Positions 3,001-58,728 of a stretch of 64,000 nt of DNA are shown here, in pieces. The DNA is from Pavona decussata. Taxonomy: Eukaryota. Every line of letters starts with the position of its first letter. Position 1 is the stretch's first letter. The stretch is taken from contig CDRNST010000196.1 of assembly GCA_977016875.1 (NCBI GenBank), positions 1,426,001 through 1,490,000 on the forward strand, in the 5' to 3' direction. Under the pieces are notes generated by a model. That model had not been told where the DNA came from. It ran no database searches and worked only from the letters and a program-made list of their open reading frames with translations. Position numbers and translations under genes: made by a program.

Positions 3001-5993
3001 TAAATCCAGTGTTGCCACGACAGCAACCTTTAAAGGAAATCCCAGGGCAAATGACTTGGAGAAGAAGACCCAAGAGATGCAACGAAGGTTTAATGAAGAA
3101 AAGGAGGAAATTTTAAACCGAGCATCAAGGGAAAAAACAAAGCTAGAGGAAGAAGTGAGAGAAGCCAAAGAGAAGCTGACCAGTTATCGCCGTTTACTCG
3201 AAGACGAAATGGATGACTTAAAGAGAAAGCATAGAAAAGAGCTAGACTACCTTAATGACAAGCTGCTGAAAGAAAGAACTGAGTTTGAGGAGAAACTTCG
3301 CCCATATAGAAATGGTTCTAGGCCCAAGATTGGAATGACGGAGACTCAAAGTAGACATTATAGTTTGGGAGAAAACAGCAACACAGATACAGAAGAGGAA
3401 AGATTGAAAGACCAACTTGAAAAACAAAGGGTGGTTCTAACTTCCAAGTTCGACAAAGATAAAACCCAGTTGCAGAATGAGAAGAAGAAGCTAATGGAAA
3501 CAATCCACGGTCTAACGAGAGAGATCAATGCCCTTAAATGTGAGAAGCGAGATTCCAAGAACTGCTACAAACAAGAAATAGAAAAGCTTGCGCGATATCA
3601 CGATCTAGAAAAAGTGACCCTTCTCGAAAGGGCTGCAAGAAAAAAAGACGAGGAAACCTTACGGATTAAAGAAGATTACGAAGAGAGATTGTCCTCGGAA
3701 CGTAAAAAGTTGCAAGCGATTATCGATGACTTTAGACGCAAGATGTCTTTAACAGAACGAAAGGTTAAAGATTTGGAGTTGCAACAAAAAAATGAGAGGA
3801 TGAGACAACAGGAAGAGAAAATGGCTACAGAAAAGAGCCTTATTCAAAGCAGGGAAGACTTTAAGATGACAATGGAACGGGAGTACAGAAAAATGCTAAA
3901 TGATGAAAAACAAAAATTTGAGCGAACAATCAAGGAGTTAACAAAGCAAATTTCTTTCCTGCAAGATCAAAGGAAAGAAATTCAAGCGAAGCTGTTAAGT
4001 AACGAGCTGTCGGGAAATACCAGGATGAATACAGAGCAGGTATCAAGGGGTAGAGTAATAATTCAGATGGAGCAAGAATATTTGGAGCGGGCTGATCGTG
4101 AGAGAAGACCAATGGAGGACAAGATTAAAAACCTTCAACAAGAAATCGGTAAACTTAAAAAAGAAAAAACCGAGCTAAAGGAAACACTTGAAAATGAAAA
4201 GCAGGAGTTAGAAGAAGAGATGGAAAAAATGCAGGAAGACATGAGACGAAAGCTCAGCAAAGCAAGAGATGAAATGGACAGAAAAACTGATGCTATTGGC
4301 AAAACGATGATTGCAAGCCAAGTGAAAAATGTTCTGGTGGGTTTACATTGTTTACGTTAATAGCTTTGTTTTGTTTAAGCGTAAGTTTCTTCCTACTTTT
4401 TTGTCTGTTTGTGCCCTGTGCGTGCATGTGTGGGTTAATTCTACAGGTTCTCCTTTCTGTCCAGCAGTATATTTTAATTTATTCCACAAGCATGCGTTAG
4501 ATATGAAGTGATACATAATCATCCCATATCCAACAAGCGGGAACGGAGTAATTGTTTTAACAAAAACAACCAAGAAATGTTGTTAGATCTTGCTAATTTT
4601 ATTTTGGAAGAACGACCAGAAGACGATTAAATGACTGCTAGTTCTCAGAAATATCATAATGACTGATATTATCCTATGATCGGGTTTTTATAAATAAAAA
4701 TCTCCGATAATTGTTGGTCCGGTCAATTTCTGAAACACTGAACATACCTGCTAATTTGGTTGTCATGATCTTGGACTGCCACACCAAATTATTTCCAGTT
4801 AATTTTCAAAAAACTTCACAAAGTTTATTGGCGCTTACTCACAGGGAAATGCTATGAACGTTCAATGTGCGCGAGAAAGACTGAATTTAAGTTACTCGTT
4901 TCTGGATGTCACTTCAGTTTAATTTATATAGCTCGCTGTTCTTTTCCTTTGAAATGCGACTGTTGTGATGGTATACTACATTTGGATTTGTCTTTTTTTC
5001 TAAGGCTTGTTCGGACGTGTCGTCCCACCATTCATCACAATGCGAAGTGAGACAGTATAAAGACCAAATCAACCTGATGGAACAAAGAAACATGACACTC
5101 AAAGCCAAAACAGAGAGGCTTGAAAGGGAACTAAGAGTTATGGGTCATCGACTGAAGACCTTAGAAACTCGAAACAAAGAATTCGAGACAGCTAACAGAG
5201 AGGAGTGGGTAAGAAGCGTACCTTATAACTGTAAAAATACGAATGCACTTAAAACGTAACTCATTTATAAACACGTCGAGAGTATACTGCATCGAATCAT
5301 ATTTGTACCGTCTCTGAACCCGTTTGTACAAATTATATTACTTATCTTGACTTTGTAAGAACGTTTTATCCTTCATACATCACCGTCATACGAAAGACAA
5401 AAAAATCTAAGACTGTGTTCTCGTACAAAACATGGATGCAGCTCGTGCTTTAATTCATTTCACAGAGTGTAACCAGAGGCGACATGCTACGCCCAACCGT
5501 AACATACCGGGGAGAAACAGAGTTCAGAGGAGTTAACGATCTTTTACTGGGTTCAAACGTTGCTGGCCTGAGATCTGAGTCCAGAGTGTTCCAGCCGAGC
5601 TATTCTTCAAGACAAAACAACACAAATGGCCAAACCTTAATGAGCTCAGGGCTGTCATATGGCGACATTCTAGAAAGGGTTCGACACACCATGCACACGA
5701 CCGGGAGCATCTCAGATGCCCTTGGAGGATCCATGGCAGGATCAGGTGGACTGGGCAACGCGTACTTCACTGGCGCCTCAAGTGTTGGGACAGGACAAAG
5801 CGAGGCTTTGGTCGGTGGCTCATTCAACCAGACCACGGTGAATTCGCTAGCCAGCGGAATGATTACGGGGGGTGGCTATTCTGGTATTGACACGCGATTT
5901 GCGGCTGGTGTTGCAGGTGGAAATGCCACAAGCGAGACAATCAGAAGCTCATCTTATGGTGGAGAGGGGATTAACCATCCGGCCGCCCAATAA
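1..5993 (+). CDS. Giant coiled-coil protein A, 5'-partial. Exons <1-4336, 5005-5208, 5466-5993; Gly/Ser-rich C-terminal tail
   Basis: Frame is open from position 2 (QELPLPVEHNK...WSIEVVG...), so the ORF-track GTG at 110 is not the start. Donor CTG|GTGGGT at 4337, acceptor TTTTTTCTAAG|5005, donor TGG|GTAAGA at 5209, acceptor TTTCACAG|5466; all phase 0 and in frame. Stop TAA 5991-5993. E/K/R/Q-rich helical rod. Confidence 0.85.
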
Positions 5994-11459: not shown

Positions 11460-14400
11460 ATGTCAGGAGAAGAAATACAAGTACTACCAATGGATGACGG
11501 CTGGGGAAGTCCGTATTATGTTCAGCCCATGTCAACCTCAATGATGAGCAGCGAAATACCATTGAACGACCAAGGACAGAACTGGGAGATGGAAGTAGTG
11601 GGCCCTATTCCAGTGGATAATAGTGCAGAGATAGAGTCTCCGAAGCAAAGAATTCGTCTACTGGAAGAGGAAAAGAAAAGCATTAATGACATGTACATAA
11701 AATCTGTAACCGAGTACGAAATGTCAAAAACCAAGATCATTCAAGAATACGAGATCAAGATCGGGCAACTAAAGATTGAGCGAGATAACTGGCAAAAGAA
11801 ATATAGCGACTCACAAAGAGAAGTACAGCGACTCAAGCAGAAGATTTCCACAATGGAGATAGAGAATCTTCGAATGATTGAAGACGTGAAGAGGGAGCTT
11901 ACAAACAAATGCAAGATGGAGAAAGGGGAGATGGAGGCAAGATTTTCAACTGAAAAAGATGAAATGCAAGATAACTATGAAGAACAAATACAGATGCTGC
12001 GAGCTGAAAACGAGGGGCTCTTGCAGATGTATCATAAGAGTACAAAAGACTACGAAATCAAGATAGTTCAGATTCAACAAGATTACGAAGTTAAGTTAGG
12101 CCAACTTAAAATCGACAAGGAAAAGTTAGAAAAGAAAAATTCAAACCTCACTGCACAGATAACCACATGGCGCGAGAAATGTTCTGGCATTGAAAAGGAG
12201 TATGAAGAAAGGTTGGCCAGCCTGAGAATTGAGCTAACAGAGAAGTTCCAAGCGGAAAAGGGAGAGATGGAAGCCATGTTCTCCAAAGAGCATGAAACGA
12301 TGATGGAGGCACATCAGAAGGCTCTTGAAGAATACGAGCTGAAGATAACTTCGATTACGGAACAGTATGAAGAGAAACTAACAGAGCTCAAAACACAGAA
12401 GGAGAAATTTGAGGGAAGTTATAATGTTTGTTTGGAGGAGATCACAGACTTGAAGAGGAAATGCAAGGAACTGGAGGAAAATTACAAGTCACAGTTAAAG
12501 GAGCTGCAGAATAAGCTGAGGACTGAGTACAGCCAAAAAGAGAATGCAATAGAAAATGAATTCGATTCGGAGAAACAAGAGATAATCACAAAATACAAGA
12601 AAATCATTCAACAAAGTGAAGTACGAATCCAAGATTTACAAAAGCAAAACAAACTGGTCATAATGAAATTGCAAACTGACAAAACACAGCTACTAGAAAA
12701 ACACGCGGTAGAAATCGAGTATTGGAAGGAAAAGCTTGCGGCTATTGAGCACAAGTACAAAGAAGAAATGAAGGTCTTGGAAAAAGAACTGATCGAGAAA
12801 TATGAAATAGAGAAGGAAGAATTTGAAGCTAATTTCATGAAAGAAAAGGAAGAACTGATCGAAGGTCAGAAGACCACGGTTCAAGGCTACGAGGCTAAAA
12901 TAACAAGCATTCAGCAAGAATACGAAGTTAAGATAGCTCAGATGGAAAAGGAAATGGAAAGACTCGAAGAGACCAACAAAACGAATATTGAAAAACTGGA
13001 ACAAGAGATTTTGGTGCTCAAGCAAAACCACGAGAAACAACAGAAAGATGTCAAAGAGGAGATGACAGAAAAATGCAATAACGAAAAAAGTGAAATCGAA
13101 GAAAGGTTTACCAAAGAGAAGACTACCTTGACTGAATCACACAACACTGTAGTACAAGAGTATGAAGTGAGGATTGCTGCTCTTCAAGAAGCGATGGAGG
13201 CAAAAGACGAAAAGATGGAAAATGAACTCAAGAATTTAAAGGATTCGCACCAGAAAGCCATGGAGACACTAAGACAAGAAATGGCTGAATCAGAAAAGCA
13301 GCATAAATTGAGAACCAAGGAGCTGAGAGAAGAAATGACCGAGAAGTATAACAAAGAGAAGATAGAATTGGAATCAAGCTTCCTGAAGCAGATCGAAGAA
13401 CTAAAAGTTTCCAATACAAACACAGTTAAAGCATACGAAGAACAAATGGCTGGAATCAAGGGGAAGTACGAGAAGAAGTTAGCAGATTTAGAAGCTGCAA
13501 TGGAAAGTAACGAAGAAAAGTACAAAGAAAAGATTCAAGGGTTGAGGGAGGAGTTGTCAAGCACCATCGACAAGTATGAACAGCTGTTGAAGGACACGAA
13601 GAAAGAACTTCGACAAAAATATGACAAGGAAAGGGAAGAAACGGAAAATGAATTTACCCAGGAGAAAAACAAATTAACTGAGACACACGAACAAGCTGTT
13701 CTTGAGTACGAAAAGAAAATTGCTGATTTGCAAGACGAAATGAAAACAAAGCTGGAGAAAGAGAAAGAAGAGAGAGAAACCATGAAAGAGTGGCATTGCA
13801 AGAAGGAAGAAGAATTGATACAAAAGTGCATAACCACAGAGGAAACGTACAAGACAAAAATAACAGCGATTAGGACGTCTTTAAAAGAGAAATGTGACAA
13901 GGAAAAAAGTGAAATCGAGGCAAACTTCGACCAAGAGAAAGATCAGCTACTCGAGAGACAGAGCGAGATCGTGAAGAAGTATGAAATGAAGATTACGGAA
14001 TTGCTTCTAGATTTCGAAAAGAGAAATTCGCGTTTTACTGTAGAAAAAGATAAACTCGAATCCCAGAAGAAGAAACTACAGGCACAACTTGATAAACTAC
14101 GGAAAGAAACTTTGAAATCAAGGGAGCAATATGAGACAGCAATTAGAAAGAACAAGGAGGAAATAACCGAGAAGTTCAAAAAAGAGACCGATGAAAGGGA
14201 AAAACAATTTAAGAAGGATATGGAGAACTTGAAGACACAACATAACAAGAAACTGCAGCAACTGAAAACAGAAAGGGACAATAGCATCGCGAAACTTGAG
14301 CAGGTGATAAAAGATCTCAAAGCAAAGATCCAGGAGATGCTACAACAAAACGAATCGAAAATGATGGAGTTAACGAACGAAAAGGAGAGACTAGTAGAGA

Positions 14401-40114: not shown

Positions 40115-41029
40115 ATGGCTGAAGCAGAACTAATCCTTAGTTTGACCACCATTCCATTTCTTGTCGTTGGGTTTATTGGAAATGTGTTGGTTATTCGAAT
40201 CGTGCACAAAACACGAGACATGCACACGCCGACAAACTACTTGTTAGCAAACATGGCTGTTAGCGATGTCATCACCATCTTTTTGGTTCCAGCATCCAAA
40301 TTTGCTAATCATCTTGAATATCAAAGTGATGGATTTAGAACTTTCATCTGCAAGACATTTGGGCTTATTGCAATCTGTGTTACAGTTTCTTCCATTACTC
40401 TTACTGTGCTGGCAGTAGAAAGATATCACGCGTTACTGAAACCTTTCCGAACAGGCTTGCGACTGAAAGAAGACAACATTACATACGCCATTGTCTTCAT
40501 TTGGATCTCAAGTGTTATCATAGGTTTCCCAGCGTTTATTTTTAAAGACTGGAGTGAGAGATATTCCACATGTGTTGGTCCATGGACTTTACACATGAAT
40601 CAGGCGGACAAAGTTTATCTGTTAATAATAGCCACATTTATTTATATCAAGCTCGTGGCGGTGTCTTTTTGTTACGGAGCCTTAATCAGGGGAATTTATT
40701 TTACCAAAACAGTTTGCGCAGGAAGAGCTGGAGAAAGGAATGAGGAAAGAACGCAACTTGTTGTCACATTTATTCTAGCGACTGTTGGATTTTTTATTGG
40801 TAATGCACCAGTTGTAGTTTTCTTTACAATTTTAGCCTCGCAAAGTGATGAACTCTTGGACTCGAAGTTGAACTCTGTTCTTCTTTCCGTGTTTGTTGTG
40901 GTGCTTCATTGTAGTTTATGCTTCAACCCGATTTTGTACGCTTTTCGTAGTACAAACTTTAAGGTAGGTTTCAAACGCATGTTACCGTGTCGTGAGCCGA
41001 TGCCATCAAATGAGATTGAATTGAGGTAA
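40115..41029 (+). CDS. Intronless class A (rhodopsin-like) GPCR, peptide-receptor-like, 304 aa
   Basis: Seven hydrophobic segments; GN (TM1), NMAVSD (TM2), ERY (TM3), W..FP (TM4), CY (TM5), NPILY (TM7); Cys in TM3 and ECL2. The start is placed at ATG 40115 by alignment with the paralog, not at the ORF-track GTG at 40043. Confidence 0.93.
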   Translation: MAEAELILSLTTIPFLVVGFIGNVLVIRIVHKTRDMHTPTNYLLANMAVSDVITIFLVPASKFANHLEYQSDGFRTFICKTFGLIAICVTVSSITLTVLAVERYHALLKPFRTGLRLKEDNITYAIVFIWISSVIIGFPAFIFKDWSERYSTCVGPWTLHMNQADKVYLLIIATFIYIKLVAVSFCYGALIRGIYFTKTVCAGRAGERNEERTQLVVTFILATVGFFIGNAPVVVFFTILASQSDELLDSKLNSVLLSVFVVVLHCSLCFNPILYAFRSTNFKVGFKRMLPCREPMPSNEIELR

Positions 41030-41186: not shown

Positions 41187-44100
41187 TAGCTCACGCAGAC
41201 ATTGTTGACTCCGCCGAATATCCAATATCCACGCTTTATGTAGGCCCCAATGATTTGCGCCTTTAATCTTCTGAGAGAATTAGCTGTTAGCGGCGAGTTA
41301 TAAGTTGATAATATTGGCTAAATGTTCGAATTAGAGGGTAGGGTGAATTTATGCCGGATAGCCTGGAAAATTAGGAGACGCAAAGAGGAAGGCAAATAAG
41401 TCATCATCAGTCACAATAACGAGGTGGTTAGTTTAGCGATTAGTTTTAAATAACAAAATTGTTCGGGCGATAAACAAAAACAAAAACAAAGCAAAAAAAT
41501 CGCCAGAACAAGAATGAAAATGTAATGCGGGCTACACTTTATGAATCGAGTTTTCGTTACGGATTACCGTACATGGCTATACATCGTTAATCTTTATTGA
41601 TAACGCATTGTAATGCATGGACTAGATGTCAGCCTTTAAATTTGTCCTGAATAATAATCTCTTTTTTTTTCTCAATAAAATTCCCAATCTAAACGCTCAA
41701 AGTGATTGTGAAAGAAGGATAAATTCATGATGTTTCATTAATTATTAACAGGATACTCGAAATTCAGCACTAATCCCTTGTGAGTTCAAGTTAACGGGCT
41801 TCTTCTGTATTTCGACGGAACCGGAATCCTAATATGACTAATTCAAAAAGATCACATCCGGTTGTACTGCTACGTAACATAACGACATGACCTATTTTAG
41901 ACAGGTTAAACTTGTTATGATGTAATTTTCGTCTCCGGACGATTTCATCGTATGGTTGTACAAAAATGAATAAAATAGATACCAGGTAACTGCAGGGCTT
42001 CCACTTCTTGCAACAAATTTGTATGTGGGTCATTTTTCCGCGTTCGGTTTTTCGGCTCCTCTTCGTGTAAAAAGCAGACCAGATAAAACACGCGCTGCGA
42101 GTTTTTTGAAAGGCTTTAAAAACTGATTTCCTGGAAAAGCGCGTGTCAAGAGAAATCATAACAATGATGCTTTTGTGAGCTTTGGAAATTAGCATACGAG
42201 AAAAACATTAAACACCGCATACTGTTAAAGAGGGGGAGGTTTTCTCGGGTTTCAAAACCACTGCACGAGATGTTTTATCGACCATTCGATAGATCAATGT
42301 GTTTATGAATTATTAATGAGTTTTTGAAAGTAACATAAAACGAAGAAAAATAAAAAGTATAAACTCCTGTAAAACAATAGTGTGCGGGACAACAAAAGAT
42401 AAAAACAAAGGAAAATATCACCGACTGAGGAATTTTATCCGGCGAACAAGACTTCTAACACATTTTAGTGTTAATGACCTGTTAAAAGGGCTTTTTAATT
42501 TAGATAATGTACATTTGTTTTTCTGCCAAGTTTCTAAGTAACGCATTTCTTCTCGTAGAATTCTATTCTTCAATCATTGCAATAGAATTGCAAAGCAGCT
42601 GTTATTTCATACAATTCAGTGAAAACACTGAGTAATATTTTACAATTATAGACAAAAACAGGGAAAAAAGAGCATGGATAGTGTAAAATATTCAAGGTTG
42701 GTGTAGCAATGAACGTTACAAATGCAAACGCATCACAATTTTCTTTTCGACAAAAACAGATATAATGTTTCGGCTAATTATTGTGAGTTGGGTTTGTTGT
42801 CATGCTCTTCAGTTGATTAATATTTCTCATTCATTATTCTTGAGGTCGTCTTTGTAGACGATAGGCATGGATTACAAGAATAGCTTTGTTGGCGTCTTAT
42901 AAATCAAAGTATCGGTAAGCTCATGGCGACGGAATTGAAGCAGCGACGGAGGACACAGCGAAGAGTCAAGGTATAAAAGCATTTATAATTTTTATTCACA
43001 ATGCCTTTATAATTTTAGTGAAATCCTTTAAGCAGATTACAACTGTGAAATTATCCATTTCCAGAACGCAGTCAATTCCTCCGCTATAAAGACTTTTATG
43101 ATTTAACAATGCCTCATCTCAATTGACACAATGATTTAAAAAATCAGGTAGAGAAAAACGGCGTGATATCAAGTGAAGGCAACCTCCACTGAAAACGTTT
43201 CCCGTTTAATCAATTTTAGGTTTGTTCTTTATTCATCCACTGCGGCTGCTGAATGTACTTCATGCCTCTTTTAATGCGTGTCCTAGTATGCGCAGGCTAC
43301 GAAGAGAACTTGATGAGTCCCTTAATTTACACCTGCCAAGAAAAGAGTTTTATTATAATTTTAACATGCAACTGACAATGTAGACTGAATGCTCAAAACG
43401 ATGTAGTGATATAAATTGAATGCTGATCGTGGTCAATAAAAAGCTTCACATCAAAAATATAATACATTTTTGACATTGAGAACTTCTGCCAATAGATTAG
43501 TTTTGAACTAGACCCAGATGCTTACAAACTAGAGGACGGAGTTGAGGCTTAAAGGTTATTAAACCAAACGAATATGTTATTGCAGTACTTTCTCTCAGCT
43601 TTTCCTCTGTCTGTTTGTTTTCTGGCCATCATGGGGCTCTGTCATTAGAATCTAATTTAAAGTGTGGAAAATCGAATAGGACGAGAAACATTTCTTATCA
43701 TCAAATAAAATAGTGTTGATTTCGTCTGCAAATAATATAATCTATGTATGAGACCATTTTTGTAGCTAGTTGATGTTTCTAAGTATGCGTAGTATAAGAT
43801 GCATTATGTGGACAAGGTAAATAAAGAGAGCTACCTCATAAGCTTCCAATGCTTCCGTAATCATAGGCCGGGCTGGCAGGACATTTTAACCACGTCTCAA
43901 ATCCTTTTGATCTTAGAAAAGAGAATTATATTAGTTAAAGCTGATCTAAGTGCAACTTTAAGCCATAGTGATTCATTAATCGATTAAACACAGGCCTGGC
44001 GTTTTGCGAGGATGTTTCATGTGATTTGAGAGGGCTTGTGTGTCTGCCATTTGCAATCAACAGCTGGCGGCATATGTGCATGTGTTTTGCGAAAATCCTA

Positions 44101-44519: not shown

Positions 44520-47305
44520 CTACCTTCCGCTTGAGTCGTTAAAGTTCTTACAAATCGTTCTACAGTCTTGAATGTCCTGTCGCACGTGCTCTAGTAAAGC
44601 CTCGTGTTGTTTGTTCAACTTCTGAAAGAACGTTAATCTCTTCTTTATTCTGTTTGTTGTGTCCTCGTTGATGCAGTTTCTGAAGGCGTCCAGCCGGAGT
44701 TTTTCTTTTTCTATCAACATGTCTTGTTGTCTCTGTGCCTCGCGAAACTTGCTGAGCAAGCCAAGAATTCTTTCGCGGCATTCCGTTCCCTCGTCGCCAG
44801 TTTTGGCCACCTTTTTCCAGTTATGTACCTCTGTTCTGATTTGCACCTGAAAAGATTTCATTTCAATGAGTATTTTTAAAAACTTGTTAAACTTTGCTGA
44901 ACAAAAGTGAGCAAATCTAAGAAGTTTCGGAGGTGGAGGCATCAGTTGTTTTACAATTAGACTGAGAGGTCGGTCGAATCAAGCTTTCTTCTCTCGACGC
45001 CAATTCTCGGGGAGAATTACCACGGGTGAATAAGAGCTCTACTCTAAAACTACAAAGAGACTAAATATATACGGAAGAAAGTGCTGGTGAGTTCATCAAA
45101 TTAAGAGCAAGGATATTTAACGGAGGGGGAAACGTGTGTTGGTAAATGTTGAGCAATAATTTGTAACCTGTAAGATCTTCTTCTGTTCTTGATAATGCTG
45201 GCAGAGTTTAGTAAAGTGTTCAAACTTGTAGTCTGGAGGAGACTGAAGGGTTACTTCTACCTGTTAATAAAAGCAACATCACAAAACTTGAAGCTAAACG
45301 AGAAGGATGGAAATTTCGCCTCTTCCGTTTCATTTTCTTAGTAGATCCTTTGAACTGGTTCTTTGATATTGCTGTCTCTCATGCTTAACATAAGATATCA
45401 ATACTAAGATGTACAAACTCGCATGGAATCACCTTTCTTGCGCTGTACACTTCAGTCAAGCCACATGGTAAGCGACTCTTTCGTTACCAAGAATTATGTT
45501 TTATTCAGTCTCATGTTTAGAGAAAAGTGGACTGCAAGCAACATGGGCACAATATCATCGTTGGATCTGACCCAGTTCTTATATAAGAACAAGCAATCTA
45601 TTGGTACGTTTACAATATTCAAATTCTACTGGGTATTCGTGATGAGCTATGCCAAGACATAATGACTAACTTACCTTCAAGAGCGTTATTTAATTACAAT
45701 GAAACCAACAAAAACATTACGACACACTTGTTGTAAATGTCCACATGACAGTGCTGTCTTCTACCTGTCAAGTTGTCTTTGGACAGTCAGTCAGTAACAG
45801 AAAATACACAAACATGTCTGAAACACACAACGTCAATACAGACGGTAAATACATTGAACACGGGCATTAAAGACATAAAGAACTAACAAGATACATCAAT
45901 GCAAAGACAAAGAATGTTCAAAAATTCTATTTTAAAGGTGACTCACGTCAAGTTTGTTCAAAGTGGACTGAAAGGAAACGGTACAAATGATAAAATTGGT
46001 CTGTAATGATTGCGTAAGGGGACGACAAAATATAAGAGCAAACCAGCAAGGCATGTATCAAGGCATGAAAAGAAATTAAACATAAAAAATGCACCACGAA
46101 ACGCTAAAAAAACGTGCTGCGCAAATACTGAGAAACAGGAAATGCACATAATTGCTAACGTGTATAGCAATGAAATATAATACATTTTGTNNNNNNNNNN
46201 NNNNNNNNNNNNNNNNNNNNNNNNNNNNNNNNNNNNNNNNNNNNNNNNNNNNNNNNNNNNNNNNNNNNNNNNNNNNNNNNNNNNNNNNNNNNNNNNNNNN
46301 NNNNNNNNNNNNNNNNNNNNNNNNNNNCCCCGTCCACACTAATGCATTTCGTTTGAAAACGCACACTTTTTGATAGTTCTTTTTTTACTTTTGAAAACGG
46401 TGACGCAAATAGCGTCACACGACATTGGTTCCAGTCCACATGCTAAAACATGCGTAACCCCAGGTCCCAGTCGTTTACATCTTTTTCGGGCGTTCTGGCG
46501 TGGACAGATGAGAACAACACGTGTGGCCGAAAACATTTTGGTGCATTTTCAGACTTTTAAAAACGCATTAGTGTGAACGGGGCCCGGTGTTGAGTTCATA
46601 GAAACGTTCAGTTTATATGACAAATTTCGTAAGTGCTTATTATACAAAAGTAAAATAAAGGCGTTCTTTACTGCTTAACAGATAATTAAAAGTAAAATAA
46701 AATAAAATAAAAGTTAAATGGAGCTATCAATTTGTAACGGGTGGGAATTAAATTAACATTTTACCGATATAACAAAGTCACCTGATGAATAAAAATATCG
46801 TTTTTTAATCTCACAGTTTAAACCATGAGTTCTCAACAGTTTTATTTCAAATGAGTCTTTCAATGCTCAGTTGTCAAAAAAAGCTTTTACGACTTTCTGT
46901 GCTAACGTGAAAGAAGGCCTTATTGCTTTTCAATTTGCATGACCCTGAAATACCTTTATTAGGCCATATTCCCGTCGTGTCAGATAAATTCAACTTACAA
47001 ATAAGAATCGGAACTACACGTCGTTCGAGTTTTTGGTAGTTAAGCTCTCAAGGCATACGATACCACTTGTTTTTAGTGTGGGTTTTACTTTGATAGACGG
47101 CGATTATTTCAAGTTTTCTTTGTAATGGGCTATGATAAAAACATCGGACTTGTCTGACGTACGACGTGTATTCTCTTCGCTTTCCTTTTAAAAAGGAATA
47201 CGTTTATGAAGTTGAAAACATACAAACCGTGTTGTTGTTTTGTTTGGCAGGTGGTAGTGCGGGTGGTTTATTGGCCAAGCCCATGGAGCTCATTGTTGTT
47301 CCCAT
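44520..47305 (-). CDS. Uncharacterised small helical protein X (about 165 aa) with a predicted N-myristoylation start MGTTMS. Coding exons 47305-47228, 45260-45168, 44846-44520
   Basis: Minus strand: acceptor TTTTCTTTTCCAG|47350, ATG 47305, donor ACG|GTTTGT; 93-nt exon AACAG|GTAGAA...TTACAG|GTTACA; acceptor CTTTTCAG|GTGCAA at 44846; all phase 0. An upstream UTR donor AAG|GTAAGA lies near 48158. Supported by homology to X'. The 3' end could instead splice at AG|GTAGGT next to the stop. Confidence 0.72.
46191..46327. other. Assembly gap (137 N) inside the first coding intron of gene X
   Basis: Run of N. Confidence 1.
46328..46584. mobile_element. MITE with (GG)CCCCGTCCACACTAATGC inverted termini; left tip lost in the gap
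   Basis: CCCCGTCCACACTAATGCATTT ... AAACGCATTAGTGTGAACGGGGCC. Confidence 0.75.
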
Positions 47306-49613
47306 GACAACTGGGCTTGGTGTAAGAAAAGCAATTTCCACGAATTAATTCTGGAAAAGAAAAGGAGAAAAAAAATAGAAATTTTGTGCACAATAATTTT
47401 CCAGCAAAGCATATCTTTGCAGTCTTAGATAATACACTGAATTTATTTTCGTTAGAGATTCCAGCTATCTGAAATGTGCCAATAAAGCCAAGAAGATACC
47501 TGCGTTCGAATCAATAGATTGTTAATGCTTGCTTGTTAATTCCAAGGATTATTGACTATCTCGTATATCTTGTTTGATGAAAATCCTTAATCTGTTTTCC
47601 TATTGGTGTTAAAATTTCTGCCTTTTTCCACTCAAGAAAAATATGTTAAGACCTGTTTGAAACACCGGTAGTTATCATTAGCCTCTAGCCAAAATACGGA
47701 ATTCAAGATATTTCCGAATTCTTGCGGCCAAAGAGTCCAGATTATAGGAATCATTTAGGGATTTCTCATGTGCTTATTATTCTTCTCGTCACGGAATGTA
47801 AATCGGTTGGAGTTTGCAAGATCCATAAAAAAATCCCATTCCTCGGAATTAGAAGATTAAAAATGTAGCTGAATGTCATTTTATATTTGCTTGAAGCAAA
47901 ACAGGAACAGCTGTTAAGAGTTCGCTTCTATGAATTCGAGTAATGTTTGTTTGTTTTGAGCGTACGCTTGCTATGACATTTGCAAATGTGCAAATTGCTG
48001 TAGCTAAATCTTTAGCTGAAAGTACCGCGATGGGTGCAAAACTGGGAGTTATGTTTTCTACTAAGAAGCACTTAAGAGTCTGAATTTGAAAATGCAAGCT
48101 ATACATATAGCTCAGCCCTACCTGAGCGCGGCTTGGACTAGATTAGATAACGTCTTACCTTGTGATAATGTTTATCGTTGAGGTTATATCTCACTACAAA
48201 CTCTCTGTGAGCAAAACACCAGAAGTTAGAACTTGAAAGTTGAAGTGAGGGAAGTTGTGCGATGCTAATTGACCAGCAAAATATTTCCTCTGCCCGTCCG
48301 GTTTGCGACTAAGTGTGCACTTATTTACCGATGGATTTCAGTTGAGTAACTGTTTTGGTGCGAGGCTTGGAACTGAATTGTATCGACTTGTTAAAGGCCT
48401 GATGATGTGAAGTCATCGTGTTCAACGTGCGTGGTGTTGACTGCACGTTTAATACGCCTTACAGTACCAGCCCTATGACACCACATGGGCACAAGTAAAT
48501 GATGCTCTTTAAGCGCTGAAGTTTATTTGGAAGGGCGCGTCCTCAGTTGTCAGCGGCAACACTTCCTAAGGGTGTGGTTTTTGGCGATCATTCAGCAGTT
48601 GTTTCTACTGTGTTTCGTTTAAAAGAAAAAAATTATTGTAAGATTCACACGAAAAGCTTGCATTTGTCGAATCTTTTAAGGTTTTATTTGCATTGCATAT
48701 CCCTCAACATGCTATCAGGTTCTGACAAACTCCAGCTAAAAGAATTTTCCTCCCATAAGTTAAAACACCCTGCAAAATTCTACTGGGATCAACTTGTAAT
48801 TTCTCCTTACTTTTTTAATATTAATGTTTTATAAGTAAAAATATTCAGATTAATAAACATACACCGTATGAAGAATGAAGACTTTGATCTTAAAAATGCA
48901 GTGAAAGGCTTTAACTTGATTCCTTATAAAATTATTTTGCATGGTATCTTTCCTTTTATCAATGTTAGAAAGTAGTGGTACCTAAGTTCTTGGCAGCTCG
49001 AAATGTTGAACAAAATGCAAATATTGCCACCTGTTGACAAGGTACTCTGATGCAAGTCGTCAGAGAAAATCAAAAGGAAAACAGACTTAACGGTGTGGGA
49101 CGTAATTATGCCAGTCCAATTATTTTAAAGGAATACCTATGTTGCTGTAGAGGTCTTGGTTAATTATTCCAAATATTCGAAATAAACAACATGGCGGTTG
49201 AATAAAGGTGGCCGTTAGGGTTTAGGTTCCGTCATGCATATCCGAAGCAACAGTAGATGTGTATCTTTTCTAAACCTCCTCACCCTCACTCCAATGAGCT
49301 CTCCGACTCACATTATTGCAAGTTTATGAGTCAATAGACTGTTTGCGCCTAGACTTTCGTGTACATGTTATCATGATAGCCGCATCGTCTTCAATTTTAC
49401 TGGAGAGGAAACGATGATATAGGAGTTAAAATAAATCTCAGCATTTAACAATTTTTAAATTACTTACAAACAACAAAACTAGTTTTTAGGAATTCTTTTG
49501 CGCGTCTTGCACCATTAGTTGAGACCATCTCTCTCACCCATAGCCTGTCTTGTACGCAACCTAAACATCTGACGCAAAACCATAATCTTTCCTGCGCTAT
49601 AGGGAGGATACAA

Positions 49614-49790
49614 AATAGGCCATTTCCGAGTTGCTGTGAACCTCACTATGAAAGCGAGGCTAAGTGCGAAACTTCTCAAATGAAAATTAGTTTTGTTTGC
49701 ATATGAATGAAAACTAATTTTCATAACAAAAACTTTGCACTTAGCCTCGCTTTCATAATGAGGTTCAAAGCAACTCGGAAATGGTCTATT
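49614..49790. mobile_element. Palindromic MITE, copy 2 (opposite orientation to 30088-30263)
   Basis: AATAGGCCATTTCCGAGTTGC ... GCAACTCGGAAATGGTCTATT. Highly similar to copy 1; the spurious ORFs over both copies share [14 protein letters not shown]...[18 protein letters not shown]. Confidence 0.88.
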
Positions 49791-51452
49791 GATCTTTTCG
49801 CCGGACTGGAGATACATTGGGAACCCAGTGCGTTTTTATGCATGCTGTTTGTTTGTTTGGGTCAGCTATCACCAGTTCATAAGCGTTTTGGCGCGAAAGG
49901 AGTACTGGAAAGACATTTTTAACAGTCAAGTATACACGTTATCTGTTCTCAGCAATCAGCACTACCCTCCCTCCTCACCCAAGAAACACCAAGGATGCGT
50001 TTTTTGGGACATATTCCGGAAAAACATATTCGAAAATCAGAACATCTCGAAAAATGTAACATATTTTTTATCTAAAACATTAATGAGAATTCCATTATTT
50101 TACTTTGGCTATTCGAATGTTTTTCGTTACTCGGGCAACAGATACAGCATAGATTTTTTCGTGTATTCCTTCTTCAGAATACACAGAATGTTTCCCCTAA
50201 AAAACGCGCCCCTAGCCACTAACCTGTGTTAAAAATAACTGGTGGAAACATTTGCGTAAGGAGGCCCGTGAGGATTGTGGCATGATTGTAGTTTTTTTGA
50301 AATAAACACAGACTGGACTGAAGAGTCTGTTCACGAATGTGAGGAGACTATAAATATCGTTACAACTCTGGTTTGGGACATTACTTTGAGGCTAATTCTG
50401 ACGTGATTGCTGTGCAACATCTCAACGAAACTAAAATAACCTCAAAGTTTCATTTTTGGACTATCTGAAAAATTAAGATTGTGATCTACCATTTTTCCAG
50501 AATTATTACATAAATTTATCCAGTAGATCTTACCCTCTATCAAATTTGTTGTTGTTGTTTACAGAAATTTTTACTGGATGACTTTCCCCCAAACTTTTCT
50601 GCAGACCAAATGTTGCGTTTACACATGCAAAAAGAAAAAAAAATCAGCATGGATTCGAAAAAGTTTCCAAATTGCAGCATTACTGTTTCCTGCAGGAAAA
50701 TTCGAATGATTTCACTTAGACTTAGTATCTAGCCGCGTGCATCTCCATGCATCCAGGCTGTCCCACCTCATGGCTTGGCGCATGCGCTGGTCTCTTTTTC
50801 CACGACTTAATTACAATTATAATGTTAGAAATTGTTAAAAATTGTTAGCGCAGAAAATAAAACCATCATTTGCATACGTAGTTAGACAAAAGACGTTTCT
50901 ATTTTCTGTGTTTTGATTGTACTGTGTTAAAATCCAAACTAGTCTGTATGAAACAACATTAACCACTTGTCTTTTCTTGGTTATAATGCTCAATTCCAAA
51001 CTTTTTAAGAGCAAACAAACAAACACCTTTCGATTAAAACTTGCCTGTCCACCATCTTTGGGACTCTTTGAATATAAATATTTATGGTTTTCCGGCAAAT
51101 TAATACACCAAAATTTCACCGGCTCGTTTCTGATTGGTCAACGCATAACCGCTATTATTATTTTTGGTTAATAAAAGAGAACGTTTTTAGCATTTTGAAA
51201 AGTAAATTGAGCAAGTTTTTGAAAATAATTTAAATTTTAAACCTTTGTTAAATTTTAATTTTGTTATGTTTTAGTATTTTATGCAGTTTTAAAATAGCAT
51301 ATATTGATATTATTTTTTCTAGTTCATGCACGGAAAACTCCAGGAGATTCCTTTAACGTTTTTACATAATTAAAACTTGTTGTTGTTATTGAAAGCTCAC
51401 GCACACTGTTCTTCTCTTGCGTTTGATGTTTGTCGGTCGAATTCACGCTCAC

Positions 51453-51459
51453 TATAAAA
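51453..51459 (+). promoter_or_regulatory. Candidate TATA box for gene X'
   Basis: TATAAAA about 85 bp upstream of a possible UTR-exon donor near 51537 and about 430 bp upstream of the ATG. Confidence 0.3.
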
Positions 51460-51886
51460 AATTCGGGAATCTAATTTCTGTCTTCACATTTGGTTTCACT
51501 CTCGGATCCAGTTCACCCTGTTCGATCTCCAAGACGGTAGTGCTCGCTACCCTCCCCTCCCTCTAAAAAAGGGCATTTCACACTGTGAAGCGAATATTGC
51601 TTCGCTATGCCTAAACAACGGTTAATCTCATCTTTGTCACCAGAATGAAGTGTAAAAAGGAGCTTATGAAATCAGGATTAGCAATGTGATATATTCTGTA
51701 TCCGATTCAAAAAAGCATGGTAGGTGAATGGTAGTTTAATATGACTTAGATAATGCGCAGAACTATTTAAAAGCCTTATGCTTTATCAGCTGCGCCGAAT
51801 GGACGTCAAACTACATTTTCGTTTCCGATCATTCAGGTCCTTTGAGTTGACAAGTTTTGATTGCGGATATTAGAATCAGTTATAAG

Positions 51887-54800
51887 ATGGGAATAGCTCT
51901 TTCAGTTCTCCGGAGACTGTCTATACTTGCTCTTTCAACGGAAGTACAATCAGATTCCCTACCGGAGCCAACTGATTCAAAGGTGACAACAAATTTTTGA
52001 ATCATTGATAACTGAAGGGTATATAATTTCCTCGCACTTACTGGCTTTACCGAGAAAGTTTGATTGAAGCTTTTCCTAACAGTTCACTACAAATATTGAG
52101 TCATGGAATGCGCGGCTTACATGAAATCCAAACATGTGATCAATGGAAACTAAGCTACAGTGTATATTACCCACGGCGTTATTGGTTTTTCATTTTTGCT
52201 ATGGGTAATTTACAAAAAGAATTGAAATATTAGGATCTTCTTATCTGAAAACGATGGTAAGAATTTCAACTGAAAACCATAATTTCAAAAGTCGATCACG
52301 ACGGCTTAGTTCGGAGATAAAATCATTTCGCTTGAATTTCTTGGGCCTCTTACTTCTATTAACTGATCCTTCAAGTGAATTTTTCATGAAGGCATTTCAG
52401 CATTTTAGCATAGAATTAACATGGATAGCTCGTGTAAGCAGTTGTTCCGTGTTGGGGCCATAATCGACAGTAAAACTCTCCTCTCGCACAAAGACATTTT
52501 AACTCATAAGTGAGAAAAGTAAGCTGTGAAATGAGTTTGTTAGCAGTAAAATATATGAGAAAATGTTTTGTTATAATTAAATATCTCTAAACCATTTCTT
52601 TATTGCAGTGAAAAACTGAAAAACAGAGCCCTCACTTCGGATCACATTGAACATTCTTTGCAGTGATCTTCGTTTTATCATTATATGTCAAATCCTCATG
52701 CCAGATTTCACTTCCACATCCTACAATGTACAATCTTATAATTCTTTACAAAAATACAGTACGTTTCTAAAGCCCGACTTCGATATTTTATTATTGTTTG
52801 AAATATTTATTATTTTACCTCAAATTTACGAAGTCAAAACGTAGATAATTTTCTTATTACCTAGTTTGCACGTCCAATCGAAAAACTTAACTTAATTGGT
52901 ACTTAGATTTAGTAATTAAATTTCTCGGTTTTCGCATAATCAATTAACATAAGATCGGATCGGAAACGTTTGAGTGCTTAAAAAAAATTCTATAACCGAT
53001 TGAATAAAGGATTTAGATCCTACGAGTCCCGCTAATATGTTTTATTTATTGTTTTTAGTGCGCCGGTAAGTCATGATACTGGCCGAATGTTTAGTTTTTC
53101 TTTGAGACATCACTGGCTTTTTTCTTTGAGACATCAGTGCTTTATGATTGTAGTTTAAAACGCCAGATATCACCTGCAATATAGACAATATTTAAGCGAT
53201 AAGAGTTTTACATTGCACTGAACAAGCTAAGCTTCTTTCTTTGTAAAGATAAGAGAGGATTTCTTAGCATCTTACAATTAACCCAACGATGTGAATCAAA
53301 AGAGATTGAGTTTCGTCGGACTGCCATGAAAAAGATTTTGATTTTTTTCAGCGATCCGTTTTTTAAACACTGTTCTATTTTGACTACTGTGTACACTCAA
53401 CGACATTCTCAATTCGGATTGGTCGAGAGCGGTACAATTAATCCCAAATAGTACTTCGTCGGAGTACCTATTACGTTGCCTTGACATCGGTGCACAAGCA
53501 CGTCAAGAAAGATGGCCGACAGTCGATTTGCAGTTTGCAAGGAATCGAAATGTAGAACAACTAAGCAACGATGACACAAAAAAAGAACACAAACCTTTGT
53601 TCAACGATTGGTGTAGCTGGGATGAAGAGCGCAATATCAATGGTAACCTTGAAAAAAAAAAAAAAAAAATCGGCCGCAGCTTTCGTAATTTTGTTGAATG
53701 GCAAGATCTTCTCGTACAATTCGTAAACAAAGAATTTAACGTATTAAAATTGGTACTCGTTATGTTTTGAAAGTTCTCAAAATTCTCAAAGTTTTCAAAA
53801 CATTACTCGGAAGCCTGGAGTGTCAATTGATTGCATATCTTGGACAATTTGTCCTATCCTACCAAAGTTTTCGTTGCTTCTGCAACCAGTGATGCATTGA
53901 AACTCTTGGGTTATTATGAGCCAGGGGGATAATGCATTTGAAGCTATAGTAAATAAAGTCCATCTAATTGCTTTTTGTTGAACTGTCTTAACTACATTAC
54001 TTTATCACAGTAATTGAAAACTTAATTCAGTATTTAAGTCAGGTAAGGCAAAACAGCTGACACCGATAGAAAGGGTATCTTGAAATTGAAAAAAAATGCC
54101 AAATTTGAGAGTCCTGTGTTTAGAAATAGCGAATATTTAGTTTCGTCAAGTCTGACAATTTTTTTTGACATTTGTATGGAATCGGGCAAGTTTTGCCCGT
54201 CATCATGCAAACTTTTGCAAAATATCATTGAATTTATGGAACTATATCTTTACTATATTAAAAGACAAGACTCAAATTTGTTCATTTAAGAGTTAAGATT
54301 TAAGATGCGTTTCCGAAAGTGTCAATGGTGTTTCGTTTCCTGGCCTACATCAAAATTAAATTTTAAATTACTGTGATGAGAACAATTTCACTAGTTCGTT
54401 GAATTTAGTAATTTCTTTCCTACAGGATGTGGATGCTCCCCGCTGTTGTAATGACGTCAAGTGCACGAGCGCTGCAAAAACTGCGAAAGAGCTGTTAACT
54501 AACATGGAGCAAATTGAAACACAACTCCACAATGAAGTCATTCTGTGGAAATTACGGTTCATACGGGGAATCTGCACCGAGGAAAGCCGACGCAACTTCT
54601 ATGAGCTTTTGGGACAGTTTACAACCTTTAATGGAATGCTTGACACAGTTATTGAATGCGAAACAAAGTATTGCAATGCGACTGGAGCAAAACACAACGA
54701 AGATGAAGTAACCGCAACAACAAGTGAAGCTAGCGAGCCCAGGAACGTATCTCTGAGTCAAGGAAAAGCAAAACAACAGGGTGAAACGGCAGACATCGAA

Positions 54801-55094
54801 GCTGGACAGTTCAAGAGTACGGCAAATGCCGAGGCAAAAGCTTTAGCAAAAAGAAAAAGATTTTTTGCCAAAGTTCAAGAACGGAACGTGAAACTGTTGT
54901 CAGTTGTTCTAAGCAAGGTAGATGAGTGTCGTTCGATGGTTGAAATCACCTGCAATGGACAGGAATTGTCAGAAAACTTTACGGGAACGTTGGAAGGCAA
55001 TGGGGTTAAATCTTTGAGTATTTTGGAGGAGTCGATAGAGGAACAACAACCCGAATTCCGGAAGAAGGAGACAGTAGTATTGTTAACTGAATGA
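51887..55094 (+). CDS. Uncharacterised helical protein X' (about 254 aa), paralog of X, with a predicted N-myristoylation start MGIALS. Coding exons 51887-51982, 54426-55094
   Basis: Acceptor ATTCAG|51837, ATG 51887 (MGIALSVLRRLS...EPTDSK), donor AAG|GTGACA at 51983 (phase 0), acceptor TTCTTTCCTACAG|54426 in frame, stop TGA 55092-55094. Exon 2 is well supported by homology to X; exon 1 is less certain. Confidence 0.72.
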
Positions 55095-57816: not shown

Positions 57817-58728
57817 TTATCTCAACTGAATCTCATTAGACGGTGTAGGTTCACGACATAACATGCGTTTGAAACCTAACCGAAAGTTTGTACTACGAAA
57901 AGCGTATAAAATCGGGTTGAAGCATAAACTACAACGAAACGCTACAACAAACACGGAGTGAAGAACAGAAGTCAACTTCAAATTCAAGTGTTTATCACTT
58001 CGTGAGGCTAACACTGTGTAGAAAACTAAACCCGGTGCATTACCAATAAAAAAGCCGACACTCGCCATGATAAATGTGACAACAAGTTGCGTTCTTTCCG
58101 CATTTCTTTCTCCAGCTCTCCCTGCGCAAACTGTTTTGGTAAAATAAATTCCCCTGATCAAGGCTCCGTAACAATAAAACAAGACCACTAGCTTAGAATA
58201 ATTAAGTATAGCTATTATTAACAGATAAACTTTGTCCGCCTGATTCATGTGTAAAGTCCATGGACCAACACATGTGGAATATCTCTCACTCCAGTCTTTG
58301 AAAATAAACTCTGGAAAACATATGATAACACTTGAGATCCAAATGAAGACAATGGCGTATGTAATGTTGTCTTCTTTCAGTCGCAATCCTGTTCGGAAAG
58401 GTTTCATTAAGGCGTGATATCTTTCTACTGCCAGCACAGTAAGAGTAATGGAAGAAACCGTAACACAGATTGCAATAAGCCCAAACGACTTGCAGATGAA
58501 AGTTCTAAATCCATCACTTTGAAGTTCAAGGTGATCAGCAAATTTGTATATTGGAACCAAAAGAATAGTGATGACATCGCTAACAGCCATGTTTGCTAAC
58601 AGGTAGTTTGTTGGAGTGTGCATGTCTCGTGTTTTGTGAACGATTTGAATAACCAACACATTTCCAATAAATCCAACGACAAGAAATGGAATGGTCGTCA
58701 AACTAAGGACTAATTCTGGTTCAGCCAT
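57817..58728 (-). CDS. Intronless class A GPCR, 303 aa, inverted paralog of 40115-41029
   Basis: Same 7TM motifs (GN, NMAVSD, ERY, NPILY). About 42 differences over 304 aligned positions by manual count (about 86% identity). Confidence 0.93.
   Translation of the reverse strand: MAEPELVLSLTTIPFLVVGFIGNVLVIQIVHKTRDMHTPTNYLLANMAVSDVITILLVPIYKFADHLELQSDGFRTFICKSFGLIAICVTVSSITLTVLAVERYHALMKPFRTGLRLKEDNITYAIVFIWISSVIICFPEFIFKDWSERYSTCVGPWTLHMNQADKVYLLIIAILNYSKLVVLFYCYGALIRGIYFTKTVCAGRAGERNAERTQLVVTFIMASVGFFIGNAPGLVFYTVLASRSDKHLNLKLTSVLHSVFVVAFRCSLCFNPILYAFRSTNFRLGFKRMLCREPTPSNEIQLR

Follow-up and report, generated by a model that had tools for sequence, protein, structure and literature searches.

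Two neighbouring paralogous genes of the coral Pavona decussata encode predicted three-helix-bundle proteins, probably N-myristoylated, of a family found so far only in Cnidaria

Small cytosolic proteins such as BORCS5 (myrlysin) and LAMTOR1 (p18), 160–200 residues in length, carry an N-terminal Met-Gly lipid anchor that puts a helical body, together with its complex, on an organelle membrane. The N-termini of Arf and Arl proteins are likewise myristoylated. A further point of comparison is the Habc domain of the syntaxins (syntaxin 1, Sso1/2, syntaxin 6/12), in which three antiparallel helices of 33–45 residues each run up, down and up behind a short flexible N-peptide, on the cytosolic face of a membrane. 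Here we analyze two genes, termed X and X', in a 64,000-nucleotide stretch of the coral Pavona decussata (assembly GCA_977016875.1, contig CDRNST010000196.1, positions 1,426,001 to 1,490,000, forward strand; hereafter the window). An initial annotation, made from the letters of the window, had placed at 44520–55094 a hidden two-member family of small, putatively N-myristoylated helical proteins.

As modelled, X and X' are like the Habc domain in helix arrangement, helix length, the flexible segment ahead of the bundle and, as a prediction, the cytosolic membrane face. They are unlike it in having no detectable sequence kinship, no SNARE motif and no transmembrane anchor; their link to the membrane would be an N-terminal lipid, not a C-terminal helix. 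With BORCS5 and LAMTOR1 the likeness is one of architecture only, which we adopt, by analogy, as a working model for both proteins. No match to the Pfam families LOH1CR12 or LAMTOR is found in 20 family members at E ≤ 1, or in five full-length orthologues and the window exons at E ≤ 10. A motif in helix 1, 'LC..YQ[DE]', had suggested BORCS5; it finds no Pfam support in any member and was set aside. Our preferred reading, to which we assign a probability of roughly 60%, is that X and X' are cnidarian-restricted, N-myristoyl-anchored helical bundles and candidate adaptors. The adaptor role taken by itself is more tentative and comes from the analogy.

The family is wider than the two genes. A HMMER profile of X, built from anthozoan sequences, was searched against 1.84 billion representative proteins at E ≤ 1e-3 and returned 39 proteins. 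All those that carry a species name are cnidarian and are labelled 'uncharacterized': Nematostella vectensis LOC5501706, a protein of Actinostola, Xenia LOC124439004, Hydractinia LOC130613352 and Hydra vulgaris LOC101238082; the rest are assembly or metatranscriptome sequences. LOC5501706 has 191 residues and is 57% identical to the large exon of X in the window (tblastn) and 66% identical to a coral orthologue (P0040). A family of two members was therefore too narrow a description: the family is pan-cnidarian, and gene models of it already stand at NCBI as uncharacterized proteins of other species. Searches of the literature by LOC and accession numbers and by topic found no publication on it. 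These matches suggest a family found so far only in Cnidaria and previously undescribed.

Spliced transcripts of X were obtained as Logan contigs of two RNA runs (runs X1 and X8) that carry the same organism label. They define a gene on the minus strand with four coding exons and a product of 189 residues. A non-coding 5' exon at 48159–48424, possibly extending to about 48458, is spliced to 47350; the joint 47350→48159 (CT..AC) is present in a contig of run X1, and 48162–48332 is covered by contig 24 of run X8. The exon with the start codon (47228–47350; ATG at 47305–47303) encodes 26 residues that begin MGTTMSS and contain KPPALPP. An in-frame TAA at 47347–47345 lies 13 codons ahead of the ATG, no second ATG precedes the coding sequence in that exon, and the N-terminus is kept in the orthologues P0056–P0060. 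Intron 1 (45261–47227, GT..AG) measures 1967 nucleotides as assembled. Coding exon 2 (45168–45260) encodes 31 residues, beginning PPDYKFEHF, with the start of helix 1, and coding exon 3 (44524–44846) encodes helices 1–3 of the bundle. The joints 44846/45168 and 45260/47228, both proposed in the initial annotation, are carried by contigs of both runs (read there as 44844→45166 and 45258→47226, 'cut +2'), and the CT..AC ends on the plus strand at both joints correspond to GT..AG on the minus strand. A single 816-nucleotide contig of run X8 spans the 5' exon, the Met-Gly exon, exon 2 and exon 3. The initial annotation had hinged on use of the Met-Gly exon, and the spliced contigs of X do include it.

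The 3' end of X had to be redrawn. The initial model ended the protein at a TAG (44522–44520), which is unused: the contig match ends at 44524, where AAG/GTAGGT forms a donor one base before the TAG, and transcripts splice from there to a last coding exon at 43836–43911 with its stop codon, TGA, at 43838–43836 and the 3' untranslated region beyond. The same donor is in use in a related coral, in which a partly spliced transcript contig (L001) runs on into a short exon that maps to 43914–43833 of the window at 88% identity (blastn); tblastn with two orthologues (P0057, P0059) matches the same exon. It encodes the conserved tail ...KGFETWLKCPASPAYDYGSIGSL, which in the window ends ...AYDYGSIGSL. 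With this exon at 43911–43836, the feature should begin at 43836. The start codon and both introns of the initial model of X were right, and the conserved C-terminal exon and the non-coding 5' exon had been missed. The four-exon layout recurs in another coral assembly (L003–L005), and the Nematostella gene has one extra intron.

Intron 1 of X contains an assembly gap (46191–46327), 901 nucleotides from exon 1 and 931 nucleotides from exon 2. Because spliced contigs link both sides of the gap in the same orientation, no reading frame of X depends on it. Beside the gap, 46200–46600 reaches a depth of 366–836 in two coral metatranscriptome runs (runs X2 and X5); in the same-organism runs the depth is low and a T is inserted after 46346. 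This segment is probably a repeat, and the assembly may have broken there because of it. In the 5' exon, the one upstream ATG, at 48416, opens a closed upstream open reading frame of 31 codons (MTSHHQ..., 48416–48321, minus strand); this ATG is 8 nucleotides from the end of the longest spliced contig.

X' lies on the plus strand and encodes 254 residues in two coding exons. The first (51887–51982, ATG at 51887) encodes 32 residues, MGIALSVLRRLSILAL...DSK, and ends at a phase-0 donor with GT at 51983; an in-frame stop lies 12 codons ahead of the ATG. The second and last (54426–55094) encodes 222 residues and the stop codon, and holds an RCC motif, the three helices of the bundle, a disordered insertion of 42 residues between helices 2 and 3, and an acidic tail. 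Its acceptor is matched by a 1201-nucleotide transcript contig from a Montipora-like coral (L007), which aligns to the window from 54424/54426, the predicted acceptor, onward. L007 has an uninterrupted open reading frame of 254 codons that starts MGIVFS; its leader of 164 nucleotides has no upstream ATG and an in-frame stop, and the start context is CACCATGG. The orthologues P0009 (Montipora foliosa) and P0015 (Desmophyllum) have the same two-part models at NCBI; they begin MGIVFS and MGIVLS and, like X' of the window, close their first part with ...DSK. All exon edges given here for X and X' delimit GT..AG introns, and both first coding exons end in phase 0.

The Met-Gly starts are real translation starts, for X by the spliced contigs and for X' by way of the orthologous transcript L007 together with the in-frame stop in the window. 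The N-myristoyltransferase pattern that we applied has Gly after the initiator Met, a residue 3 that is not charged, aromatic or Pro, a position 6 occupied by S, T, A, G, C or N, and a position 7 that is not Pro. As initially noted, both first coding exons start MGxxxS, and both agree with this pattern (M-G-T-T-M-S-S in X, M-G-I-A-L-S-V in X'). Across the family, Met-Gly opens all 11 full-length N-termini, from Hydra to corals, and a small residue (S, A or G) occupies position 6 in 10 of the 11; in none is residue 3 a forbidden one or position 7 a Pro. The starts are MGTTMS in hexacoral X, MGTSTS in Xenia, MGASFG in Hydractinia and MGATLI or MGAALI in Hydra, with MGAALA and MGASQS in other members. 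Those of X' type are MGIALS, MGIVFS and MGIVLS, so that Gly2 and Ser6 are present in all three known full-length X' N-termini. Of the two residues whose conservation across Cnidaria was to be checked, Gly2 and Ser6, the first is kept in every full-length member, and position 6 is a small residue in all but Hydra. Residues 3–35 cannot be aligned between clades. Since the roughly 30 residues that follow are unrelated between clades, Gly2 appears to have been retained selectively. Judging from these sequences, X and X' are probably myristoylated and membrane-associated.

Several observations weigh against the view of X and X' as cnidarian, myristoyl-anchored bundles. The argument for myristoylation consists of the sequence consensus and its conservation, and the Hydra proteins have Ile at position 6, outside the usual N-myristoyltransferase pattern. 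Part of the Met-Gly bias has another explanation, in that a favoured G at +4 of the Kozak context brings with it Gly, Ala, Val, Asp or Glu codons at position 2. The N-terminus of X', rich in Arg and free of acidic residues, also resembles a mitochondrial presequence. The 51982/54426 junction of X' is supported by the orthologous transcript L007, not by reads of Pavona decussata. The restriction to Cnidaria rests on the named members and one anthozoan-built HMMER profile, and no taxon is assigned to P0065–P0069, P0071, P0074–P0079 and P0084. Finally, the fold matches described below score no higher than chance would give for helical bundles and are uninformative on function.

The first of these points lead to the alternative that survives best, namely that X and X' are soluble, non-lipidated helical bundles in which Met-Gly is kept for the start context or for N-terminal processing. 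The evidence for lipidation is drawn from sequence, the Hydra Ile fits this alternative, and so does the preference for G at +4. In addition, conservation in hexacoral X extends over all of the first 26 residues (22 of 26 shared by Nematostella and coral), and Gly2 may be just part of that motif. The pattern across the family argues the other way: Gly2 is present in 11 of 11 N-termini from three clades in which the next 30 or so residues cannot be aligned, position 6 is S, A or G in 10 of 11, and the rules for positions 3 and 7 are never broken. We consider the soluble alternative rather unlikely and retain the myristoyl-anchored reading.

To describe the body of the proteins, AlphaFold2 models of full-length orthologues were used, P0059 (Nematostella) on the alignment of the X set (A1) for X, and P0009 (Montipora) on that of the X' set (A2) for X'. 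The X model has helices at residues 36–71, 77–113 and 118–162, with a predicted template modelling score of 0.64 and a core predicted local distance difference test score of 80–96; residues 1–33 and the C-terminal tail are disordered. Helices 49–81, 86–123 and 162–205 of the X' model match those of X, and the region of the 42-residue insertion is disordered. Both proteins end 25–50 residues past helix 3, in disordered tails. The models thus make an antiparallel three-helix bundle of about 125 residues, behind a disordered segment of about 30 residues, very likely. A bundle of three to four helices had been proposed initially; three are present in both models, and a fourth is not. The PPDY sequence before helix 1 was considered as a WW-binding PPxY motif and rejected; it is strict in about half of the members and absent in Xenia, P0065 and Hydractinia. 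In the model it sits at the helix N-cap, where a structural role is more likely.

No known domain could be assigned, as in the initial annotation: Pfam (20 members), PDB sequence profiles and Foldseek all gave no significant match. Pfam scans of the window exons and five full-length orthologues at E ≤ 10, and of the 20 members of a family alignment (A3), returned nothing recurrent or significant. Sub-threshold rows for TcdB_N, GCK, RelA_SpoT, Mvb12 and BORCS7 each occur in at most two members and are noise, the BORCS7 row (E 0.39) in one member. Searches of PDB sequences, made with a single protein and with three profiles as queries, gave nothing below E 0.16. Foldseek against the PDB gave a best E of 0.1, and its top three matches for X are syntaxin-1. 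In an exhaustive structure search with VIA-align, whose own calibration marks Z scores below about 13 as common among helical bundles, X matched the STAT2 coiled-coil (5oen_B, Z 13.5), MukF (12.9) and the syntaxin Habc domains 3lg7_A (12.8), Sso2 (12.5) and 1s94_B (12.1), and X' matched 3lg7_A (12.4), 1s94_B (11.9), syntaxin 6 (10.6), syntaxin 12 (9.8) and STAT2 (9.7). The root-mean-square deviation to Habc domains is 2.2–2.3 Å for X and 1.9–2.2 Å for X'; the squid syntaxin Habc domain 1s94_B aligns to both models over its full length of 118 residues, at 2.2 Å and 1.9 Å, respectively.

These matches raise the question whether the family derives from a known three-helix family, far diverged and stripped of the rest of its parent protein; syntaxin Habc would be the likeliest source, with spectrin, BAG and STAT as further candidates. 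Syntaxin Habc is among the best matches of both AlphaFold models (Z 9.8–12.8; Foldseek E 0.1). Values of Z below about 13 are what chance gives, STAT2 and MukF score equally high for X, and the identity in the structural alignments is 7–11%. No Pfam syntaxin or SNARE match is found at E ≤ 10 in the 20 members, nor any match to PDB sequences or profiles, and neither protein has a SNARE heptad region or a transmembrane anchor. The STAT coiled-coil and the MukF middle domain give the top structural scores for X (5oen_B, 140 residues at 2.4 Å). They are unlike X and X' in being parts of large multidomain nuclear or bacterial proteins with no sequence likeness to them, and STAT reaches only Z 9.7 for X'; we regard these as generic matches of long helices. 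Spectrin repeat and BAG were rejected, with no Pfam match and with Z scores (8.7–8.9 and 8.0–9.2) under those of syntaxin and STAT; a nesprin-2 profile gave E 0.4. Descent from one of these families is quite unlikely. Going by the models, X and X' may be described as Habc-like up-down-up bundles, with no family membership implied.

The membrane anchor of X' appears to differ from that of X. In place of the proline-rich linker of hexacoral X (KPPALPP), X' has an Arg-rich amphipathic segment, followed by the conserved RCC, and the hydrophobic moment over residues 2–16 is 0.29–0.50 in X' vs 0.06–0.17 in hexacoral X. X' orthologues begin MGI[AV][FL]S and continue in a hydrophobic/Arg pattern (MGIVFSLFRRILARL in Montipora), with a moment of up to 0.50, which is like the N-termini of Arf and Arl proteins. 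Unlike in those proteins, no GTPase domain follows, and nothing hints at a nucleotide-controlled switch. The same segment could be taken for a mitochondrial presequence or another targeting peptide, which would place X' in a compartment other than that of X. Residues 2–16 contain two or three Arg or His and no acidic residues, and AlphaFold draws a helix at 2–15 with low confidence, both in keeping with such a peptide, as is the moment. Gly2 and Ser6 are nevertheless kept in all three full-length X' N-termini, as they are in the X clade, and the segment, a short one of about 15 residues, is very like the Arf/Arl N-termini. We therefore judge a presequence improbable, and favour a lipid anchor for X' as well as for X.

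X and X' are almost certainly real paralogous genes of one cnidarian family. The gapless block of 93 residues first seen between them was reproduced with its 22 identities (z 5.9); its BLOSUM62 score of 35, vs -83 ± 20 in shuffles, was reached by none of 5000 shuffles, and by none of 1000 when the best offset was allowed. The second block has 10 identities in 35 positions, and the insertion in X' is exactly 42 residues, both as initially reported. A Smith-Waterman comparison gives z 5.8, and in pairwise BLASTP the C-terminal block is the sole significant one (E 9e-5). Orthologues were gathered exon by exon through word searches, yielding 23 relatives of X' and more than 30 of X. Aligning the two profiles with hhalign (A1 against A2) gave a probability of 96.3 and E 1.6e-9 over 123 columns, in the register of the initial annotation and with the same large loop insertion. 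The HMMER profile built on X only recovers proteins of X' type in the full library: P0015 of Desmophyllum (E 8e-4), P0075 (4e-11), P0078 (9e-9) and P0084 (2e-4). P0075 keeps the X-like 'DPNFKDF' at the start of helix 1 and bridges the two types. Chance likeness between two low-complexity helical reading frames, or mis-joined exons, a reading prompted by the E of 0.94 for BLASTP of the first block alone and by exon 2 of X alone matching nothing in X', is already refuted by the profile-profile E, the shuffles, the cross-recovery, the spliced contigs at the joins and a linkage kept in three species.

In a maximum-likelihood tree of the 20 members, scleractinian X' groups with three sequences that are more divergent, and this X' clade is split with support of 100/99 from an X clade to which the hydrozoan proteins belong. 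The tree has no root and a long X' branch; it suggests that the duplication took place no later than the origin of crown Scleractinia, and possibly long before. Both copies are under purifying selection. Measured against the orthologous transcripts L001 and L007, the ratio of nonsynonymous to synonymous substitution rates is 0.04 for X and 0.25 for X', and X' is the faster-evolving copy beside a slowly evolving X. Two further species share the head-to-head arrangement of X and X'. In Desmophyllum (L002) the pair has neighbouring locus tags, OS493_035919 and OS493_035920; in a third species, contig ctg497508 carries X' near 894 kb (minus strand) and X from 913 kb onward (plus strand). On ctg497508 (L008), the first exon of the X'-like gene was not found within 6 kb upstream. 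X' was not found within 10 kb of Nematostella X, from which its absence from Nematostella does not follow.

Based on these observations, we suggest how the proteins might act. The initiator Met would be removed and N-myristoyltransferase would acylate Gly2, so that the rigid bundle would hang by its flexible N-terminal segment from a membrane, on the cytosolic side. The most conserved surface, on helices 2–3 (LIEKEK.RL..., R.K.RL.FF..LN.QHE.LL), would be where a partner docks, and the protein would serve as a peripheral-membrane adaptor or scaffold. In X', the anchor would have changed to a myristoyl group plus an amphipathic Arg-rich helix of the Arf/Arl type, with the conserved Cys-Cys as a possible palmitoylation site, and the loop between helices 2 and 3 would accept large insertions. 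Anthozoan X has an additional conserved aromatic motif at the C-terminus, YD[YF]GS[IV]GS[LI]. It fits the loose pattern [WFY]xx[LIV], a weak lead towards a short docking motif.

A bolder proposal can be made, which we hold to be a long shot: X and X' might be a cnidarian invention that predates the split between Anthozoa and Medusozoa, a myristate-tethered, 'SNARE-less' Habc-like module that regulates SM proteins or SNARE assembly, or another trafficking complex, perhaps as a heterodimer expressed from a shared divergent promoter region. If this were true, the module would serve membrane traffic specific to cnidarians, for example cnidocyst biogenesis and discharge or symbiosome handling.

What is new is the family itself, conserved and strongly constrained in all major cnidarian lineages and having no Pfam model, solved relative or name; the fold and the anchor are of common kinds, and the interest is moderate without a function. 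The gene model is now corrected, a fold is predicted, and one predicted property can be tested cheaply, a lipid anchoring that would depend on Gly2. Orthologues are present in tractable models (Nematostella LOC5501706, Hydra LOC101238082 and Hydractinia LOC130613352), and lineage-restricted membrane adaptors are candidates for cell biology specific to cnidarians. X and X' also offer a clean example of a slow parent beside a fast paralogue whose membrane anchor appears to have been re-engineered. The work has no present bearing on any long-standing open question.

Some family sequences differ in architecture. P0075/P0105 (L008:6001–6954), a divergent protein of X' type, has about 190 residues of PSVTA/HPSVTA-like tandem repeats in the loop between helices 2 and 3, at the site of the 42-residue insertion of X' in the window, and gives a spurious Pfam match to herpesvirus gp350. 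P0061 (371 residues) joins the region of Nematostella X exon 3 to about 200 unrelated upstream residues and reads into an intron; it looks like an error of gene calling, and so do many of the tails, N- or C-terminal, of X and X' proteins derived from contigs.

The surroundings of the pair are conserved in part. Nematostella X lies tail-to-tail with a factor B-type gene with Sushi, VWA and trypsin domains (L006:15960–24100), and the same convergence is seen in the window by tblastx, with the factor B-type gene at 31218–37590 on the plus strand, facing X on the minus strand. The microsynteny has persisted from the split between anemones and stony corals, and in the coral a G-protein-coupled receptor (GPCR) gene is inserted between the two. 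X and X' are flanked in the window by two intronless GPCR reading frames, at 40043–41029 (plus strand) and 57817–58728 (minus strand), whose proteins are 86% identical, vs only about 22% for X and X'. The two GPCR genes thus either duplicated much later than X and X' or have since been homogenised. The next gene past X' in Desmophyllum encodes a dynamin, not a GPCR, and no GPCR was found in the retrieved flanks of the other loci. Together with the GPCR identity, these neighbours indicate that the nested GPCR and X/X' pairs of the window did not arise from one duplication event.

Between X and X', an element of about 180 nucleotides (49613–49791) reaches a summed depth of 6,000–128,000 in hundreds of variant contigs and is present in all four RNA runs. 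Its contigs have many loose ends and opposite-strand joints, and reading frames of both strands share a 20-residue peptide. The element is probably an interspersed repeat, transcribed and very abundant, similar to a short interspersed nuclear element or a miniature inverted-repeat transposable element. Elsewhere in the window, 1–5000 and 12000–18000 show a strong purine skew on the plus strand, with a GC skew of 0.15–0.26 and an AT skew of 0.35–0.46.

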